From NCBI RefSeq assembly GCF_036588685.1, contig NC_086378.1, forward strand, positions 23,746,001 through 23,810,000: a stretch of 64,000 nucleotides of DNA, written 5' to 3'. The notes beneath the pieces were generated by a model. The model was not told the origin of the DNA. It saw only the letters and a program-made list of their open reading frames with translations, and did not search any database. The position numbers were made by a program, and so were the translations under genes. Source of the DNA: Mytilus trossulus (taxonomy: Eukaryota). Positions within the stretch are counted from its first letter, which is position 1; each line of letters begins with the position of its first letter. This document shows, in pieces, positions 7,586 through 63,100 of the stretch.

Positions 7586-7777
7586 TTCTTATCCCAGGTA
7601 TAGATTACCTAAGCCGTATTTGGCACAACGTTTTGGAATTTTGGATCCTCAATGCTGTTCAACTTTGTACTTTTTAGGCTTTATAAATAGTTTGATATGA
7701 GCGTCACTGATGAGTCTTATGTAGACGAAACGCGCGTCTGGCGTACTAAATCATAATCCTGGTACCTTTGATAACTA
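7586..7777 (+). mobile_element. 5'-truncated retrozyme, family A
   Basis: Reverse complement of the family A unit at 24760-25390 and 43621-43880; contains an intact hammerhead. Confidence 0.85.
7701..7744 (+). ncRNA. Type I minimal hammerhead ribozyme, intact core
   Basis: Stem I GCGUCA/UGGCGU; core CUGAUGA; stem II GUCU/AGAC with loop UAUGU; GAAA; palindromic stem III ACGCGCGU; GUC cleavage triplet with predicted cut after 7738. Confidence 0.9.
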
Positions 7778-9037
7778 TTAACAAAAATCAATTTTAATTT
7801 ATATATTTAATTAATTCCATTTACTTGTCAACGGAAGATGATTGTAAACTCTTATACACATCAAGACAAATAAATTATTTATATCTTTCATTATTTTGTC
7901 GTCATGTGTACTTTCGTTTTCCCCTGATGAATGATCAACCACATGACTAGTTAGATAATCTGTAAGATAACAACAATAAACAATGTTAGCTACAATGGGA
8001 ATAGTAAGTTTAAATTGTTAAATAACATTATTCATATAGAAAAAGAGTTGTGGGGTATACATAAATCTGAAAGCAATCAAATGACAAAGATCAACATACA
8101 TTTATAGGTGTCTATACAATTTATGTCCAACCGTAAGTTATATCTTTGTAAATACGTCTTTTTGATCGAGATTGAAATTTCAACTGATATTTCATACTGT
8201 TTATTTTTACACTACTGTTTCAAGTTATGGTGAAGGTTGGCACCTGTTAAAACGTTTTATTTCTCTTCATTTGTTTGCATTTGTCCTAAGTCAGGAGCTT
8301 CTTGTCAAGTGATTGTCGTTTGTTGATGTGGTTTATAAATGTTTCTGCCTTTTTTTAAAAATATAGATTAGACATTGGTTTTCCGGTTTGAATTGTTTTT
8401 CACCAATCATTGTGAGACCCGTAATAGCTTGTAAAGTGTTGAGTAGAATAATTTTAATTCAACATGTTACTCATATATCAGCATGCTTTTATAAAGAAAA
8501 ACCTTAATGTACTATTTATATTTGTTATTTATTTCGTCGTTCTGCTTTTTTGTTATTAATTGTAATTGTATGTTCTTGGAGTACTTATTTGCCAGAATAT
8601 TGATCGCAATGAGGTTATAATTAATGCCATATTTTTTATAGTTTCAGGGACAGGCGGACAAACGAACGGACGCAAAGACCAGAAAACATAATGCCCCTCT
8701 ACTATACTAGGTGGTGTAAATAAAAAGCATACTTCAATTAGGTAAATTTAAAAAGGAGAAGTCAATGGAAATGTACATAAGTCAGCCCATATCAACTACC
8801 GAAATAAACGGAAACAATATCACATGCCTGGCTTGGTATGAGCATTTTCCGATGAAACTTTTGTTTTAAACATGGTTTCCTTGCTTTATTTTTAAATTGT
8901 GTGAGAGATGTTTATATTTTATTGCTCAATTATATTGACACAATTGGATATGTAACCCAAAACACCTTCCAGTTTTAGACCATGGATCGTTTGTGTGTTA
9001 CATCTTCAGTTCGTTCTAAACCATTTTATTTTTTCAG

Positions 9038-23878: not shown

Positions 23879-24759
23879 ATAAAACATTGTAAAAGTGAAA
23901 AAAAAGTATTGTAATGGATATTTGGTCTTTCCGACAATATAAAAAAGAAGATGTGATATGATTGCCAATGAGACAACTATCCACAAAAGACCAAAATGAC
24001 ACAGGCATTTACAATTATAGGTCACCGTACGGCCTTCAACAATGAGCAAAGCCCATACCACATAGTCAGTTATATAAGGTCTAGATAAGACAATGTAAAA
24101 CAACACTAATTTTAAGTAAACAAAATCTGTAACTCGACAATTTACCAGTTTATAAACATTTCATTTATTCAAACCTGAAAAACACTACAGACAAGGGGCT
24201 TACGAATGAGTTGCGAAAGACTTTCACCGTAAGATGGAAACCTGTATACAAACTTAAATGTGTTTATATCATTTAATTACAATTAGTTATTAAATTCAAC
24301 GCATTCAATATTTTTTTAAATTTATAAATGCTCATTTCCATGATTTAACAACATAATTTGGCTCTTTCAAGTACATGTACTATGATGAAAGTGTGTACCC
24401 CGTAAACAGTTAATTTACATAAAAATGAACATAATATACCTTGTTTTCATAAAAGTGCTGTTAACAAATTAAAAAAAACAAAATGTTACGACTATACAAT
24501 TCCGAACAAGTAATGTTAACAAAAAAGTAAAGGCGTACAGTGAAATCCATACCAAGTAGGGCTCCATAAATAGGAAGCTGGTGAAATTGATTATTTTCCT
24601 GATCAAAATCTTTCAAAAGAGAGTATAAGGACATTCACCTTTAATAACATAACATAACAATGCAAACGACGTAACTGTTAGGCCTGGTTTAACAGTTATC
24701 AAACATTCCTTCATAAATAACATGTTTTTCCCCACATTTATTCAAGATCTATATTACTT

Positions 24760-25390
24760 GTTATCAAAGGTACCAGGATTATAATTCAATACACCAGACG
24801 CGCGTTTCGTCTTCATAAGACTGATAAGTGAAGCTCAGATCAAAATAATTATAAAGCCAAACAAGTACAAAGTTGAAAAGCATTGAGAACCCAAAATTCC
24901 AAAAAAAAAATTGTGCCAAATACGGCTAAAGTAATCTTTTCCTGGAATATGAAAATCCTTAGTTTTTTCGAAAAATTCAAAGATTTGTACCAGCAAATTT
25001 ATAAAAATGACAATATAATTGATATTAATGTCAACACCGAAGTGCTGACTACTGAGCTGGTGATACCCTCGGGGACGAAACGTCACCCAGAAGTGCATCG
25101 ACTCAGTGGTGTAAATTGTTATCAAAGGTACCAGGATTATAAATTAATACGCCAGACGCGCGTTTCGTCTGCATAAGAATCGTCAGTGACGCTCAGATCA
25201 AAATATTTATAAAGCCAAACAAGTACAAAGTTGAAGAGCATTGAGGACTCGAAATTCCAAAAAGGTTGTGCCAAATACGACTAAGGTCATCTATTCCTAG
25301 GATAAGAAAATTCTTAGTTTTTTCGAAACATTCAAAGTTTTGATACAGGAAATCAATAAAATTGAAAATATAATTGATATTCATGTCAAT
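24760..25390 (-). mobile_element. Tandem retrozyme family A, ~1.75 units of 358 nt with two degenerate hammerheads
   Basis: GTTATCAAAGGTACCAGGATTATAA at 24760 and 25118. Hammerheads at ~24791-24834 (core mutated to CUUAUCA) and 25149-25192 (core CUGACGA, first stem II pair mismatched). Confidence 0.9.
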
Positions 25391-31969: not shown

Positions 31970-32348
31970 TTAATACGTCAGACGCGCGTTTCGTCTACAA
32001 AAGACTCATCTGTGACGCTCAAATCAAAATAGTTATAAAGCTAAACAAGTAAAAATTTGAAGAGCATTGATGACCAAAAAGTTTTCCAAATACGGCTATG
32101 GTAATCTTTTCTTGGGATAAGAACATTCTTAGTTTTTCGAAAAATGCAAAGTTTTGTTAAAGGAAATTTATTGAAATGGCCATATAATTTATATTAATGG
32201 CAACATAAAAATGCTGACTACTGGGCTGGTGATACCCTCGGAGACGAAACGTCCACCAGCAGTGAATTGACCCGGCGATGTAAATAGTTATCAAATGTAC
32301 CAGGATTATAATTTAATATGCCAGATGCGCGTTTCGTCTACATGAGAC
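31970..32348 (-). mobile_element. Retrozyme family A, slightly more than one unit (~344 nt)
   Basis: Hammerhead at 31975-32018 (core mutated to CAGAUGA) and a second truncated hammerhead at ~32318-32348. Confidence 0.85.
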
Positions 32349-43038: not shown

Positions 43039-43620
43039 CATTACAACATGTTTGAAATGAAATGGTGAACATTACCTTGTCTAATTAAAGCTTTCCTCAA
43101 ACCATAGCACACTAAAACAATAACCCAATTGCGAGATGTATACATTTTGTAAGTACTGAAACGCACTAAATTTCCACAGAGATTACTCATTATAAACTAT
43201 GTAGAATATTTGGAAAAGCATTGCACGATGCTTCAATGATTTTAAATAATAGCACAATAATATCTTAATTGATTGAAACAGATGTTTAAAACGACTTCAC
43301 AAACCATGTTTGGAATGAAATAATAACAGATATTGAGAACAGAAAAGAACAAAAACAAGACGAACACTCAGTCTTTTTTGGCTATACTATTTTTGTGACA
43401 AAACAATTAACCGTGTCTGACAGGGCAGCGATCAAAGATGCATAAAAATACATACTGAAAATAACTGTGGAAGTACACAAGGAAATCTATAAGGCACCGA
43501 AGAAAATTCTAAACGAAAAGTTCCTAATCAAATGGCAAACTCAAAAGTTCAAACACATCAAACGATTGGACAACAACTGTCATACTCCTGACTTGATACA
43601 ATCGTTTTCTTATGTAGAAA

Positions 43621-43880
43621 GTTATCAAAGGTACCAGGATTACAATTAAGTACGCCGAACGCGCGTTTCGTCTACATAAGACTCATCAGTGACGCTCATA
43701 TCAAAATATTTATAAAGCCAAACAAGAACAAAGTTGAAGAGCATTGAGGATCCAGATTTCCAAAAAGCTGAATACGGCTAATGTAATCTATACCTGGGAT
43801 AAGAAAATCCTTAGTTTTTTCATAAAATTCAAAAATTTTTAAACAGGAAATTTATAAAAATGACCACATTATTGATATGA
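43621..43880 (-). mobile_element. Retrozyme family A copy with near-intact hammerhead (43652-43695)
   Basis: Minus strand GCGUCA-CUGAUGA-GUCUUAUGUAGAC-GAAA-CGCGCG-UU-CGGCGU: intact core, GUU triplet, first stem I pair mismatched. Confidence 0.85.
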
Positions 43881-46663
43881 ACATGAGTGATTGAACCTAG
43901 TTTTATAGGAAAAGTACTAAGAAGTGAAACTTACAAAAAATGTATGGGGTGCCGTTTTCTCGATGGTATCATATCTTTGTAGTTTACAAATTAAATGAAG
44001 TATAAAAATCATTAATGGACAGCTTGATAGGCCGCATTTCAAAACATCTCTCATTTTCACTTCAATCTGAATAGTCGGACATGGTACCAGAGGTATGTGT
44101 TATACTAAAGACGAAATACCGTTAACAGTAATTGACAAAGTAGTTGTTCCTTGGAATTTCGGACGTGTCTTAGATTTAAATTATGGTTGGTCTATGGAAA
44201 TTTACGTCTTCAATAAAAAATAAATATTAACACACGTTAGAACATTAAACTCAACATTTGCGGCTTATAATTATAATGATAACCGAATACAAAGGGTTCG
44301 ATTGAAGCACTTATGTATCTGCAATTCAAAATGGACTACCAACGCATGTTAAATTCCTTTTACTGACACGTGTCTTTACCTTCTAATAGATAACAGTTTT
44401 TAACTAACAGTTCACAAACGGATATCGATAATCAATTCAAGTTACGACTTAGATATTAAGTAATACAATATGTTAAAAAACGAAAGCCAAACATAGTGTC
44501 AATTTTGTTTTCACTTAACATACGAAAGGTCAATGTATTAGGTGAGATCCATGTCAGTATAAAGAATGATTTTTTTAACAATTTTTATTGGCACCTCTCC
44601 ATGTAAGTCCAAAAATAGCCCCGTGTTGTTACGAGTGGAATAAAACAATCAGATAAGACTGAAATTTCAATTAACAACGATAAGTCTTTGCGTCTGGCGT
44701 ATATACAAAATTTAGTCCTGGTATCTATGATGAGTATATTTTTTTTTGATGATTTAATTCAAGCAAAAATAAGATATTGAAAATATTAACTATTTTCCCA
44801 GTATAGGTAGCTGCCAATGTGTTTACATATTGTTGTTGCTTGACCTTTTTATGACGTAATTGATATATGTGTATGGTATTTATTTTCAACTGACATTAAG
44901 CGTGATTCAGCAGGTAGACATTACTTTTTTCTATTTAACTGAATCACGCATCATACACGTGTACATATAAAACTGAAAATGGCAGCAGTAACAAGTCAAG
45001 TGTGATCATTTGTGAAATGAGTAATAGCAGAAAAAAATTATTAAAAGAAAATGTTGATAACTTAGTTTTGGAGGAATACATGTATAATCTTGAAGGAAAA
45101 TTAAGACAACAGCAAATTTTGAACTTGTAATGTAACAACACATTTTGCCAAGAAAAATATTATCTGAATAGTTTAGCTACTATTTTGGACAGTTAAACAT
45201 GTATCGGCATGAATACCCCTAGTTCTAATAAGTCATCATAATGTTTGAAAAGATATGAAAGAAACACGATCAGCATGTAAATGACCAGCTTATTATCTAA
45301 ATGAGATGAATATTATAACGCAATTTATCAGGGGGTAACTTTTATTCTCATATGTAGATTTACATATAAATAACTTATGGACATGCGAATATAATATGTT
45401 AACAAACAGAAGAGAGTTTATGTTGACGTTTTCTACTACTGATAATCTGGCACTTACTATAATTATACCAGGCTTATAATTTGACTGTCCCTCTGGTATC
45501 TTTCGTCCCTCTTTTACTACGCATGACTCGCGTTTCTTTAGACTTAACAGGGCGCTCATAACCAAATATTGTTTTGGAATTGTATGGCTTTCAGCTATTA
45601 CGATATGATTTGAGGCGCACTAGTACTGGAATTATAAAGATTAAAACTCATTTATCATCAATTTGACAAATGTCGAAGTAGAAAAATCTAGGTATTTTCA
45701 ATGATTTAAAAGTTTTAATTAAAGAGAAGTTCTGATATTAATTTTATCATATGAGCATTCACTTCTATTTTGGTGATAACTACAGGTAGACAAAAAAATC
45801 AAGCAGAAAATTTTGCGGGAACTGCTTCTCTCTATATTTTTCAATATTAAAGATAAGTACCTTTGTTTATTGTTTCAAAAACTGTGAACAATATCAAGCT
45901 TTATTAAAGAATTTTAAATATATCTTTTTAAACAATATTTTTTGAAGGTCAAGAAAAGAAAGGTAGTGATAAGCAGGCAACATTTGTATTGCAAGGAATG
46001 AATAAAAGTAGAGGATTCCGAATATCTGACAAAAAGGCAAAAACAAGACACATGCAAGTGTAGAAAAGATTCTTGATAACTCTATAATATAATGATGAAA
46101 TTGAGAAAGCCTGTAATGGGTTAACTTTGTTGTTGTTTGACCATCATATGACGTAATTACTATATCGGTGGTTTTTTTTCAAGTAACATTTAGCGTTATT
46201 ATAGAGTTTAACATTATTTGTTTTTTGTTCAGCTGAAACAGCCGTCATACCCGTAAGCGATTCCTTTTATAGAATGGAAATACATATATCTTCTCAATAT
46301 GCCTTGTCATTCTGTTCAAGGTCGTTACGTGACTTATAAAGTTGCATTCTATTTGATTCGATCTCTAGTGGAGAGTTGGCCATCTTATAAGTGTATAATT
46401 CCCCGTTCAAATCATCATGTGTCTGTTAGAGCCTTTAAAAGCTAACCAATCGGTATGAGTTTTTCTCATTGTTGAAGGCCATACGGTTGCCTTCATTTCC
46501 TAACATCCACTTCATTTTAACTTTGATGAATCTGTAGTTGTCTCATTTGCAATCATACCACATCTCCTAATTTTCATATGTCATACCTTTTTCATGTTTT
46601 ATTTATGTATGATTGTAAAATCACATAAAGTCAAACAAGTTAAAAAAAAAAAGGAACCATTAA

Positions 46664-57435: not shown

Positions 57436-59781
57436 AGTGTTTAAATAATCACAACAAGGACACATAAACAGACGGTGCTAAAACGTGTTTTAATCCGTAT
57501 TTTGTTTTATACATTTGATACATATAAGTAATTTATCATTTAAATTCATCCAAAATTATCGAAATAAAGGCAACAGTAGAATACCGCTGTTCGAAATTCA
57601 TAAATCGCTGGAGAAGAAACAAATCCGAGTTACAAACCAAAACTGAGGTAAACGTATCAAACATAAGAGGACCATGACACAACAGAAACACAACATTAAA
57701 ATAAAACATACATAGATACGAACTATAATATAACAGTGTCAATTTCCCTGACTTGGTACAGGGCATTTTAAGATAAAAATGGTGGGTTGAACCTGGTTTT
57801 GTCGAATGCCAAACCTCCCGCTTTAATGGCAATGTTAATGATAATACCTTATTGTTTAAATAGTTTGAGGATGTCACTAATTTAGATTTTACGCAAACAT
57901 AATAGTGCGTTTAAGGAACAAAGAATAATAATATATGTGGTATATAGTGACTGTGTCTTTTTATATGCTGTAATGTTATACTATTGTTACCGGTAAGTTG
58001 AAGGTCAGTACCGATTTAAACTTTCAAACCCTTTGCATTTGTCCTAAACCAAAAACCAGAATTTTTGTGGTTGTTGTTTGTTAATGTTTTTCAAAAAAGG
58101 GTTTCTCGTTTTACGTTTTTTTATAAAGACTTGACCGTTAGTTTTCGATTTGATTGTTTTACAGTATTCATGTTGATGTCCTTTATAGCTTACTGCTCGG
58201 TGTTAGCCAAGACTCATATCACATCTTGTATATCAATATATGAATGAAACAGCATCAAAACGACAAAAATAACCAATTGAAATACATCTACAGGGCAATA
58301 TCGCGTCCTCATGAATAGACAAGTATATATACAATATGTCAAAGTTGTGTCGCCATAAGTCTATACAAATTGTACATTGTTTTAACCAAAACATTTTCAG
58401 AATTGCCACTTGACAAAAATCTGCTATCACCAAGATTTCTCAAACGGGACAAAGTCAATGTCAACAGGGTTTTCAACTGATTTATAGTTTGTTCTGATAT
58501 TGTATTGTTACAACACTCTCCCATGTTAGAATAAGGTTTGGGATCACACTAACATTTTTAACCCCGCCATTTTCTGTATGTTTGTGTCTGTGCCAAGTCA
58601 GGATCCTGTAATTTGTGGTTGTCGTTTGTTGATGTGTTACATATTGTTTTCCTTCATTTCTTTATTCTTTATGCATAAATAGGACCGTTGTTTTTATTTC
58701 GTTTGAATTGTTTCAAATTAGTCGTTTCAGGGCCGTTTATGGCTGACTATGCGGTATGTAATTTGCTTATTGTTACAGGCACTTTGGTAACCTATAATTG
58801 TCAATTTCTGTATCATTTGATCGTTTCTAGAGAGTTGTCTCAATAGCAATCATACAGTCAGCATCTTTTTTTTTATATTTTAAATGTACATTTAGAGATC
58901 TCAAATCTCCCAAATACTTACCTTTTGACGTTATAGGTTGTGGAAACACCGTTACGCTCTGAATTTTAGACAAAGAAAGACAAATATGGATATATAAATC
59001 ATTGGATTAAACATAGGATTATGTTTATGTATATCAAAGCTGTCAACGAAAATACATTTGAATTTGAATTTTTTTTTTTTTTTTATTTATTGTTAACTGA
59101 GATACAATATTGACTTCAAATCTATATGTTGATTAGGAACCCTAGTAAATAAGCTTTACGTATTAGAAATCATGCCTTTCAGTTGTTTATTTGTAAAACT
59201 TGTTTTCATCGAATCAAAATAAAACTATTTTTGAATTGAATAGTCTACAACTTAAAAAAAAACTGCTCATCCACTAGATACGCTAAAAACAGTTGTAACA
59301 GGTTTAATTGTTAAAGTAATGTTTATTGGGTATATGTATTAGTGAAAGATAAGTTTGACATGCAAGTCCAACGAGATGATAAATATTATAAATTAAGATA
59401 GATGTAAATTGATAAATAAAAATATCATTCCCTGCGGGTATCATCAGACTATAGGTTCGTGAATCTAAACTGATATGATCGATTAATATATTCTCATTTA
59501 ATCAATTTACACAATATTAAGAAAAACACCTAATCAGTTAATTGATTAATGTGCACACAAATGAACTTCTTAGACAAACTTGACCTGGTGTCGAATCGAC
59601 TATTGCCCCATTTTGGTGTATCACAAGTGTTCAACTTATCAAGCATGTCCTCTTTTTTATTTTTATTTTGGGGTTCATCATCTGTAGTACAGTTTGAACC
59701 ACTTTTGAAATATCTATGAGCATATTTAAAGAATTTTTTTTATTTTACCTTCTTGAATACAATTAACGGTACCAATTTTCT

Positions 59782-59826
59782 TGCACCAGATACGCATTTC
59801 GACAATACATGTCTCTTCATTGATGC
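59782..59826 (-). ncRNA. Second family B hammerhead, core C3 mutated to A (probably inactive)
   Basis: GCAUCA-AUGAAGA-GACAUGUAUUGUC-GAAA-UGCGUA-UC-UGGUGC. Confidence 0.8.
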
Positions 59827-60135
59827 TCGTGGCCAAAATAAAATCCAAAGCTTATATAAAAGATGAAGAGCTATAATCCAAAAGGTCCAAAAAGTATAGC
59901 CAAATCCGTGAAAAGGAATCAGAGCTTTGCATGAGGGAGATACATTACTCAATTTATAATAATTTCTATCATTTTGTAACAGCTTATTTTAATAACGCAA
60001 AAAAAATCCGTATTTTCATGCCAGTACCGAAGTACTGGCTACTGGGGTGGTGATACCCTCGGGGACTAATAGTCCACCAGCAGAGGCATCGACCCAGTTG
60101 TAGTAATATAATTAACGGTACCAATTTATTTAATT

Positions 60136-60181
60136 TGCACCAGATGCGCATTTCGACAATACATGTCTCTTCAGTGATGCA
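60136..60181 (-). ncRNA. Type I minimal hammerhead ribozyme, intact core (family B)
   Basis: Minus strand UGCAUCA-CUGAAGA-GACA-UGUAU-UGUC-GAAA-UGCGCA-UC-UGGUGCA: 7-bp stem I, 4-bp stem II, palindromic stem III AUGCGCAU, AUC triplet. Confidence 0.9.
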
Positions 60182-63100
60182 CGTGGCCAAAATATTTGAA
60201 ATCCAAAGCTTATATAAAAGATGAAGAGCTATAATCCAAAAGGTCCAAAAAGTATAGCCAAATCCGTGAAAGAAATCAGAGCTTTGCATAAGGGAGATAC
60301 ATTCCTCAATTAAAAATAATGTCTATCATTTTGTTTCAGCTAATTTTAATAACACCAAAAATCCGTATTTTCATGCCAGTACCAATATTCAATTATTATC
60401 CATTGTAACATGTTACAGGTATCTAATTTTCTACGAACTTCGTTTATATCTGCTTTTGACTTTAGGATAAGCACATCCTTGACATGTTTTTTTTTTAATT
60501 AGGTCTTTTAGTTTGACTTACTTGGTTATTATAAAATGTGCACATCAATACAATACTAGAAGCTATATCAATCGGATTTCATTCGATGGTTAATTGGGTA
60601 GGTTAGTGAGCAATCTAAACGTGTTTGCTTTTTGTCTAAAAATGAAATGAAGAAATTATTAAAGTGTTTAACAAATAAAATTGATGAGAGTTAAGACATA
60701 ATACGAAGTCTTTCTATTGGTAAATTACCCACACAGTTAACCTTAATAACAGATTCAAGCGCTAAGAACAGACTAGGAAAAACAAGCCCTGGAGTCAATT
60801 CAATTCTAACCTAGTTAAACCGGATTGGATATTCTTCATTATTATAGGAGCTGCTGGTAAAATATAACCCCATTTAATTTAGTTAAAATGAATATGTAAC
60901 AAAAGATGATGTTATATAATAGAAGACGCTTTAAGGGATACTCTATTTCATCTTTTATCTTATTTGATAATATTTATGTCATCTACCAAAAATACTTTGC
61001 CATTATTTAAATGTTTCCTGATAATGAGAACAAATATAACGCCACTACGAACTTGATATATACCTGATCAAAGTTCAAACTAATAAAAGAGGTTGATAGA
61101 CAAATAGAATGATAAGGGCTGTCCTACCATACCTGCAAACAGTGTAGGTTTTACAGAAAATGTGCAAGCCCTTCATTGTACAGGAATCATTATATGTGCA
61201 ACTAAATGAGGACATTAACATAAAAAAATGTGCAGCTATCACGACGATATTTGTGCCAGAATATGACTGGTCATTTTTGTTATTAACTTTAAAGGTAAAC
61301 CATTGTTAATATGAAGCTAGATAATATAAAAGTTGACGGAAATATGATATTTGTAATAAGCACAAATAACGCAAGGCTTATTTTTCATCATCATCCTTAC
61401 AAAAATGGATCGGCTTGGAAAATTGACAATTGTTATGATAGTGTTATTCTATTTGTATTTGTATTTGTAACTGTTAAGTCTATTTTTCATGACATACTTT
61501 AAGTGGCTCGGTACTTATACATTCCGCAATTTAATTGAATGTTGTCTTTAATTTTTGCCTTTTTGCTTTTTTTCATAGCAATTTCTTTTTCTTTGTTTTC
61601 CATTTTTTTTGTTTTTGTAGTTATTAAAAAATTTCACAATGTTGACTGCTGTACTCTTATTTTTGACATTTTAACCTCTATTTTGTTTACACTTCATTGT
61701 CAATAAAATGATATAATACTCCAACATTGTCTACGTAAGTTAAGTTTTAACAATAATTAGTTATAGTGGATACAGATTACAACTAATATCAATCCCTTTC
61801 TACTTTGCGAGTGCGAGTGCTGCCTTGTAGCGGCATTAGCTTACTCTTTTACGAATTTTACAAGGGTGTCTTTTTCATGCAAGTGATATTGCTATATTTC
61901 TCTAAAGACAGGTCAGCTATTTATCGTCCCCTTCCGACTGACTATCATCATTTCTCAAGACTCGCTAATGGTGTCAAGCATTTTTGTCAAGAGAGAGCTG
62001 AAACTAAGTCCCGGAAATGAAATATCTCTACCAATCCAGAAATATGACAGTTGTTTTCCGTTCTTTCAAGTGTTTTAACACTTGATTTTACCTACTGATA
62101 AGGGACATTCCGTTTTTAATTTTCCTTTGAGATCAATATTTTATTTATTCTAATTTTTCAAACATTCTTTAATTGTACACTTTTCGTTAGGGGTTTTATT
62201 AAATTGTTTATTAAGTTTTTGTTGTGCTTTATTGAATGAATCAGTTATGAGTTTTTATAAACTATTTTAAGTGAACTTCTCATTTCAAGAAGACATCATC
62301 CACCAAACACGTTCGACCATTTTTTTTACATAAATATGCAAAATGAGCGATGAGCACGATGAACATGACGTTCCTAACCAGGGCTAGTGGATCGTCATGT
62401 GAAAAAGACCTATATTAAAAAGTAGTAGTGTTTCTAACGATGTTCTTTCTTTATTTTTTCGTCAACTATATTCTTTGATTAGACACAAGACAGGCGGTTC
62501 AACCAGAACAAAAACAAACTAATATATACCAATGAAGCCCAAAAAGGGAAATATTAAATTCAACAGCCACATGCATGACTTTTTTTTTCAATATTACAAA
62601 ATAAGTGCTTATTACTAAAAAAACATATTCAGAGAGCTTTTAGCCGGATAAAATATACTGAGCCAAAAAGGTTTAGCAACATAAATGTGAAATTTTATTA
62701 TATCACAAAATCATAACAACATATAATTTTAATAATTACAGAATAAAATTATGACATGTCAGAAGCGACATGAATGTTCATCACCCACATTGACTAGGAT
62801 TACTTTTGTATTGAGCGCGGAAGGATAAAAATTCGGAAATGAGTATAGTGTTATTCAAAATCAATTTCTCAGCTATGTCCTCAGTGCACCAATGAAGGAT
62901 TGGTAGGCACACCAGCAGCAGCGAAAACATATTGTCACGTGTAAACGTAAAGCGAATGTAGCGCTCCTCCCTTTGACGATTTTGTTTTTGGTCTATAGAT
63001 ATCGACCTATACTATGCAGTTGCAATTTGTCGATATCTGTTTGTTAGTCTCTAAATTGTTGCCTTATGTACATTAAATCGAGCCGCGATGTAAGCAACAC

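Follow-up and report, generated by a model that had tools for sequence, protein, structure and literature searches.

[quoted passage not shown]

A conserved block in three retrozyme families

The window (the whole stretch of mussel DNA that was analyzed, 64 kb) contains three copies of a short sequence block, here called the module, each of them lying in a unit of about 355 bp on the same (minus) strand as the type I hammerhead of that unit (Table 1). The three positions had been proposed in the initial annotation from the sequence itself, and the sequences are present there as written. A profile built from 103 copies recovered exactly these three module copies in the window, the match of copy 1 extending over 25118-25019 (E 5e-25). 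The consensus given in that annotation, the exchange of the apical loop between copies (GUUUC vs UAUUA), and the observation that a G-U pair fits the hammerhead strand only were also correct. Copy 1 shows private changes (GAUGCA, a deletion before GAC, and ACUGAG/CUCAGU), and in the RNA sense about 45 nt separate the cut site of its hammerhead from the module downstream. The core 14-mer of the module occurs three times in the window as exact matches, versus 0.86 occurrences expected at up to three mismatches. In the whole genome (1.3 Gb) it was counted 12,113 + 12,194 times (about 24,300 copies) versus 10 + 6 times for the reversed control, and the majority of these copies lie inside arrays of 350-355 bp.

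Three retrozyme families carry the block: family A, with the loop GUUUC; family B, with the loop UAUUA and about 2,700 copies; and family M, with the apical hairpin GGAGA-UUUA-UUUCC and about 570 copies. They are the same element as the non-LTR retrozymes of Mytilus galloprovincialis, which have been described as 350-390-bp repeats with type I hammerheads and abundant circRNA, and the published clone Mg353 belongs to family M (PMC7229834). In that work (Cervera and de la Pena, 2020), primers were picked on the "most conserved motifs," and the degenerate primer 110R_Mytil_Rtz sits on the module, although the block was given no function (PMC7229834). The earlier statement that no description of the module was known was thus nearly right: its function had not been described, but the block had already been used as a primer site. 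A literature search for the motif strings returned nothing relevant.

Table 1. Positions of the module copies, neighboring elements, retrozyme insertions, and reading frames.
Feature	Position	Strand	Remarks
Module copy 1, family A (decayed)	25051..25107	(-)	Outer stem, helix X, apical GAC/GUC hairpin with loop GUUUC
Module copy 2, family A (decayed)	32220..32276	(-)	Outer-stem 5' strand and X mutated; profile E 3e-23
Module copy 3, family B	60041..60098	(-)	Loop UAUUA; ACCACC replaces ACCAGC; profile E 5e-31
Type I hammerhead, unit of module copy 1	25149..25192	(-)	RF00163, 24.5 bits, E 0.0016, below gathering score
Hammerhead_1, weak match	24791-24834	(-)	Rfam
UUCG-loop hairpin	25030..25049	(-)	Directly 3' of module copy 1 (RNA sense)
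UUCG-loop hairpin, family B version	60020..60039	(-)	Directly 3' of module copy 3
AC-rich leader	25108..25121	(-)	…AAUUUACACC; immediately 5' of module copy 1 (RNA sense)
Family B leader	60099..60110	(-)	…UUACUACA; immediately 5' of module copy 3
Family A insertion	24758..25389	(-)	Unit 121-359, 1-359, 1-39
Family B insertion	59756..60383	(-)	Unit 115-359, 1-359, 16-38
Family A insertion, slightly less than one lap	43613..43881	(-)	Unit 127-357 plus 2-45; module and UUCG hairpin absent
5'-truncated family A copy with hammerhead	7586..7783	(+), opposite to other copies	Unit 202-359 plus 1-45
Open frame, 52 codons	L001:2534-2692 (array G000:C1:138-143 kb)	(-)	AUG within hammerhead box CUGAUGA; runs through the module
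Read-through false proteins P0001, P0003, P0005, P0014, P0037, P0072	Outside the window		

Conservation of the block

One real unit of each family was aligned, and in this three-way alignment the conserved block began at the leader (UUAC.ACC) and reached as far as the start of the hairpin that follows. Identity among families A, B, and M was 0.9-0.95 in the block, versus 0.55-0.65 in the hammerhead and 0.25-0.55 across most other parts of the unit, which bears out the earlier claim that the block is conserved far above its surroundings. Variation on the array unit was surveyed in one RNA run (raw reads) and in contigs under three further species labels. Among the variable places listed, 22 and 17 were in the flanks on either side of the block, and a single real one, a linker A/U that separates family A from family B, was inside it. 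Apart from this linker, none of the variants listed inside the block reached 5% across the four species labels. The core is also present in four metagenome contigs. Two of these contigs, L061 and L064, were attributed to another organism because 1 kb of their flanks is without counterpart in this genome. The conservation of the block appears to exceed what shared ancestry gives, and it supports the proposal of the initial annotation that a second constrained RNA domain lies on the ribozyme strand beside the hammerhead.

Such uniformity might also be expected if the block had no function of its own and had passed between the families, through gene conversion or template switching near a start site of reverse transcription, the block then being younger than the rest of the unit. 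Retroelement enzymes are able to switch templates, the block adjoins the proposed start site (see below), and most of it never varies within this genome. However, the core persists in contigs of another species and in divergent tandem units, where changes are found mostly in loops, and decayed dispersed copies do gain changes within the module, indicating that mutation is not limiting. We therefore regard an exchange of this kind as improbable.

Coding constraint was considered as well and rejected. The family M hairpin is longer by 1 nt and so changes the reading frame midway through the block, and the 52-codon frame that runs through the module (Table 1) is open in one array only, so the block is without coding constraint. 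This frame, found in one family A array, echoes that of the Poseidon element PAc of Anolis carolinensis, whose ORF begins inside its hammerhead.

Predicted fold and covariation of the module

The complementarities of the outer stem, of helix X (GAUGCC/GGUAUC), and of helix Y (GCUGGUG/CACCAGC) are all present in the sequence. All structure predictions (local, circular full-length for A, B, and M, and RNAalifold) gave one nested imperfect hairpin of about 58 bases that contains X and lacks Y. From its base to its tip, this hairpin consists of the outer stem ACUGGG(U)/(G)CCCAGU, a small internal loop (C vs ACCA), X, CU/AG, UGG/CCG, and the apical stem GGAC/GUCC, and in the predicted folds it is followed by the UUCG hairpin. 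The local hairpin is contained in the circular full-length folds of the three families, in which the leader is fully unpaired (A and B) or about half paired (M). Pair probabilities were 0.96-1.0 for X and 0 for Y, folds in which Y was enforced were 8-10 kcal/mol worse, and the fold z-scores of the sense strand were -3.1 for family A and -4.0 for family B. A closing stem between the leader side and the sequence past the UUCG hairpin, predicted in A and B, was not recovered by RNAalifold and was discarded.

Two-sided changes were searched for in 98 distinct copies and were found only in the apical stem (C-G to G-U in 32 cells) and in three pairs of the UUCG hairpin, which covaries between families (GUCAACAC/GUGUUGAC vs GCCAGUAC/GUACUGGC). 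Two subfamilies of M also differ in the apical stem, with A-U vs U-A. In the 98 copies, none of the pairs of X and Y showed a two-sided change; both helices are invariant, and therefore this genome cannot discriminate between them. The outer stem, X, CU/AG, and UGG/CCG, which make up most of the hairpin, are likewise invariant in this genome, so covariation is silent on their pairing. The compensatory change that had been pointed out in the outer stem (ACUGAG/CUCAGU) is real, but it comes from a decayed copy (85% identity, with other changes in the module), one of the 98 distinct copies, and taken alone it is no evidence for the stem.

Module-like units outside this genome

The 52-codon frame was used as query in an exhaustive protein search. 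The long protein matches proved to be three-frame read-throughs of 73-77-nt tandem repeats in other assemblies, giving false proteins of up to 1,401 aa (Table 1). As each base of these repeats had been read in three frames, the DNA of the units could be solved back from the translations with a support of 0.89-0.99, the result being an inferred sequence that may contain errors. Each unit consists of an AC-rich leader, the module, and a short tail, without a hammerhead, and it corresponds approximately to unit positions 46-120, the segment that is absent from one-lap mussel copies. Arrays of 73-77 nt were absent from this genome. A link between the 52-codon peptide and an autonomous Penelope-like element (PLE) was also tried and rejected, its 98 matches being spurious ORFs over repeats, none of them with reverse transcriptase context among those inspected.

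The 73-77-nt units keep the leader AYCAC, GGUC-GAUACC, YUGGUG-GAC-UAUCA-GUC-CYCGAG-GGUAUC, and CCAGCA-GUCAG. In these units X stays paired, its G-U pair being changed to A-U and, in one family, A-U to G-C (the latter according to an alignment by eye). In place of the 3' strand of Y, the units have AUACAC, AUCCGC, AUGGGC, or AUCCAC, or lack the segment, and two to five of the seven Y pairs are kept. Over the sequences outside this genome, X keeps four to six of its six pairs in most of them, and Y two to six of seven. In these relatives the 3' strand of Y appears to behave as a loop, unlike a helix. Of six such units, four had the mussel-type fold within about 2 kcal/mol of the optimum, and in the remaining two it was clearly less favorable.

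On the reverse strand of contig L064, at about 770-950, a minimal hammerhead-like motif (CUGAUGA...GAAACGCGUC) was observed about 105 nt upstream of the module. The module of this contig begins abruptly at GGUGGUG-GAC, and the sequence upstream has no match to the mussel families.

Evaluation of the module as a pseudoknot or a ribozyme

The initial annotation had interpreted the crossing helices X and Y as a pseudoknot and had suggested an unrecognised ribozyme as one of three possible functions, the other two being an internal promoter and an RT-recruitment signal. A true pseudoknot with X and Y formed together, possibly a self-cleaving ribozyme of the hepatitis delta virus (HDV) kind, would have its strands in the order X-Y-hairpin-X'-Y', equivalent to P1-P2-P3-P1'-P2'. 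HDV-like ribozymes sit at the ends of other retroelements (the 5' ends of R2, RTE, and L1Tc), so that both this strand order and the association with retroelements are shared with the module. Moreover, the Watson-Crick complementarity of Y is perfect over 7 bp and is kept in A, B, and M, about 0.09 such matches being expected by chance in 58 nt according to our own estimate, and L064 has GGUGGUG together with CACC(C)ACC, a possible compensation.

The remaining evidence is against this structure. Besides the null probability of Y and the energetic cost of enforcing it, neither X nor Y shows a two-sided change, and in the sampled relatives the 3' strand of Y is replaced or missing. The linker from X to Y measures 3 nt and that from X' to Y' 0 nt, which would make the usual stacked pseudoknot geometry impossible, side-by-side packing being the only arrangement that fits both helices. 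When the module was compared with a nested double pseudoknot, GGUAUC and ACCAGC were found to be contiguous, leaving no room for P4 or for the catalytic C of J4/2; P1.1 is also missing, and the first pair of X is G-C and not the G-U of HDV-like ribozymes.

At the gathering threshold, Rfam returned no ribozyme match in the whole window, and at E up to 10, in families A and B, it returned only weak Hammerhead_1 matches beside the module. The hammerhead core CUGANGA...GAAA...UH is absent from the module, all Hammerhead_1 matches lie outside it, and family B has no GAAA in the module loop. Reads showed no pile-up of ends before GAUGCC, an argument that is weak since the hammerhead site is likewise without pile-up. 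In addition, the Mg353 transcript contained the module and reached into the first bases of the hairpin that follows, and hammerhead products are the only ones described for it (PMC7229834). Altogether, the module is most likely neither a pseudoknot nor a new ribozyme, both proposals being unsupported, and a crossing structure of the HDV kind seems highly improbable.

Transcription of the unit

Retrozyme RNA was derived chiefly from the hammerhead strand, at about 5:1 in the module (run X24, L001:1690-2044), and many reads of this run link the end of the unit to its start, as tandem or circular molecules would. The reads revealed no site where many molecules start or stop: no pile-up of read ends was detected anywhere on the unit, either at the module or at the hammerhead cut, which was taken as positive control, and no ligation or cleavage junction mapped to the module.

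These data bear on the suggestion that the module is an internal promoter or transcription start element of the unit. The pLTRs of PLEs do contain internal promoters (PMC8557442), and the block sits where a unit-length element defined by its copy ends would start. However, read starts do not accumulate at or near the module, A and B boxes were not seen by eye, and ARAGORN detected no tRNA-like sequence (0 genes in the window, and 0 at relaxed score in module units and 73-77-nt arrays). Furthermore, the distribution of changes between loop and stem is the pattern of an RNA. Judged by this indirect evidence, a promoter is very improbable.

The module could alternatively be a structural domain of the circRNA with a role other than reverse transcription, such as stability, folding or regulation of the hammerhead, recognition by the circularising ligase, export, or binding of a host protein. 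In mussels, retrozyme RNA is abundant and mostly circular (PMC7229834). A stable, independently folding pair of hairpins is predicted in A, B, and M, and arrays with the module and no hammerhead exist in other organisms, both as such a domain might show. On the other hand, ligation and cleavage junctions are absent from the module, and a structural role would leave unexplained why, with leaders of unequal length, the three families all have their copy ends 4-9 nt upstream of the module (see below). For these reasons we consider it unlikely.

Dispersed copies end at a fixed point in the leader

Dispersed copies of families A, B, and M are 5'-truncated, with scattered 5' ends, and have their 3' ends at a fixed point. 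This point lies in the AC-rich leader (UUUACACCAC, UUACUACCAC, and UUUACAACCAC). The outer stem begins 4-9 nt downstream of it and the hammerhead cut is 33-51 nt away on the upstream side, and because of this distance from the cut the copy ends are not hammerhead products. Dispersed family A copies terminate inside the stretch homologous to the leader of module copy 1. The copies of the window end at unit positions 38-45, and family B copies, to which module copy 3 belongs, were also seen to end at unit positions 33-35. About 27 of 43 sampled insertions had clean ends, located at position 44 in A, 33-40 in B, and 27-51 in M (most of them at 46-51), the rest being interrupted or continuing into arrays. 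In reads and contigs of all four runs, heterogeneous flanks join the unit at positions 41-43.

The insertion at 24758..25389 begins right after a UUCG hairpin and stops right before the next position of the module, and that at 59756..60383 follows the same end logic. The truncated copy at 7586..7783 ends at the same unit position as the insertion at 43613..43881. Of the nine retrozyme pieces in the window, six fall short of a full lap and for that reason lack the module. With copy ends 4-9 nt upstream of the module in each of the three families, RT recruitment is the best fitting of the three functions that had been suggested for it.

A candidate element for internal initiation by a PLE enzyme

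Retrozymes have been proposed to depend on PLEs (PMC7229834; preprint 10.64898/2026.07.22.740005), and the way in which the retrozyme circle is primed and recognized by a reverse transcriptase was left open in the 2020 paper (PMC7229834). A precedent is provided by PAc (Frangieh et al., 2024), in which reverse transcription starts internally, in an AC-rich stem-loop downstream of the hammerhead (PMC11167929). Its start, ACAACACA, is located at +111-118 of the ORF and 85-92 nt past the hammerhead cut, and the template must reach about 55 nt 3' of the start, where a protein-binding motif is presumed (PMC11167929). Cleavage by the PAc hammerhead is dispensable, the ends of genomic copies coincide with the start sites, and the Anolis element is also without RNA-seq read ends at the hammerhead cut (PMC11167929).

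The mussel elements share with PAc the order of hammerhead, spacer, AC-rich start, and RNA 3' of the start (which is required in PAc), as well as copies that end at the start site (a putative one in the mussel), an unused RNA 3' end, and the lack of read ends at the hammerhead cut. Two traits of PLE-type initiation were found in them: a fixed internal copy end that coincides neither with the hammerhead cut nor with the RNA 3' end, and an AC-rich putative start tens of nucleotides downstream of a type I hammerhead. They differ in that the region is coding in PAc, with two start sites that give a 34-nt "tail," whereas the mussel element is non-coding and has a single cluster of ends, which is also closer to the hammerhead cut (33-51 nt vs 85-92 nt). 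No similarity between the module and the PAc region was evident by eye, and since the PAc binding motif is undefined, homology with the mussel module cannot be claimed.

[quoted passage not shown] According to this proposal, RNA of the hammerhead strand would fold into one long imperfect hairpin with the UUCG-type hairpin next to it, and a PLE enzyme may bind this hairpin domain, by analogy with PAc. cDNA synthesis would start in the leader, AC-rich and unpaired, at a point that precedes the hairpin by 4-9 nt and follows the hammerhead cut by 33-51 nt, and copying would then run toward the 5' end, round a circular or multimeric RNA. The mussel copy ends would accordingly correspond to start sites, as has been demonstrated for PAc of Anolis (PMC11167929). 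With the hairpin lying 3' of the start, it would not be copied on the first pass, and only copies longer than about one lap would carry it. The short arrays of other organisms that contain only the module are not predicted by this internal-initiation model. A search for an autonomous PLE carrying the module or the leader found no PLE ORF in the 350 kb of DNA examined.

Part of the evidence might be explained at the DNA level, if the endonuclease or DNA-binding part of a PLE enzyme recognized the block as duplex and new copies homed into old ones at the leader, forming head-to-tail arrays; the constraint would then be on the sequence and not on the RNA fold. The block is nearly invariant and most of its stems are without compensatory changes, most of the genomic copies are in arrays, and there are parallels in known elements, since recognition by the Penelope endonuclease of D. 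virilis was reported to require the "tail" region of that element, and PAc makes nicks in its own pLTR (PMC11167929). In contrast, the variable places lie in the hairpin loop and the changes in the apical stem preserve pairing, as expected from an RNA fold, the conserved G-U pairs suit only the transcribed hammerhead strand, and PAc cleaves AT-rich DNA with a small sequence requirement (PMC11167929). We consider recognition of the duplex rather unlikely.

If the module acts in internal initiation, the hairpin beside the fixed copy end would offer a concrete target for two questions, how the retrozyme circle is recognized and primed and which RNA motif is bound by PLE enzymes. With three families and about 24,000 copies, the module is open to direct mutation tests, and it may help in the design of circular-RNA or PLE-based insertion tools.

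Comparison with other RNA signals of retroelements

The 3' stem-loops of LINEs and SINEs and the 3' UTR of R2 resemble the module in that a conserved structured RNA directs where the enzyme starts and in that non-autonomous elements keep it while the rest diverges. They differ in position: those signals lie inside the copied 3' end, whereas the mussel hairpin is located 3' of the proposed start.

PLE enzymes are the sister group of TERT, and the core of telomerase RNA, formed by template and pseudoknot, is also a structured domain located just 3' of the place where a TERT-related enzyme starts copying. In a bolder version of the proposal, X and Y would form together in a compact side-by-side pseudoknot acting as a platform for a telomerase-related PLE reverse transcriptase; leader and module would be the counterpart of the telomerase RNA template and pseudoknot core, and the 73-77-nt arrays of other animals would result from the same enzyme copying the core. 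However, the pseudoknot of the module is unsupported, and copying extends over hundreds of bases without the stop imposed by a boundary element, so we hold this version to be quite doubtful.

Lengths and 5' ends of the insertions

The RNA-sense 5' ends of three copies of the window (25389, 43881, and 60383) map to unit positions 115-127, barely within the UUCG hairpin or immediately past it, and these three insertions amount to one or two laps minus the segment formed by the module and that hairpin. A polymerase that circled the RNA and halted at its own landing pad would leave such ends; being three cases, they are an observation and not a test. A solitary piece of 38 bp at 19427-19464 matches unit positions 6-43 only, that is, from the hammerhead cut to the copy end, and recalls the optional "tail" of PLE insertions.
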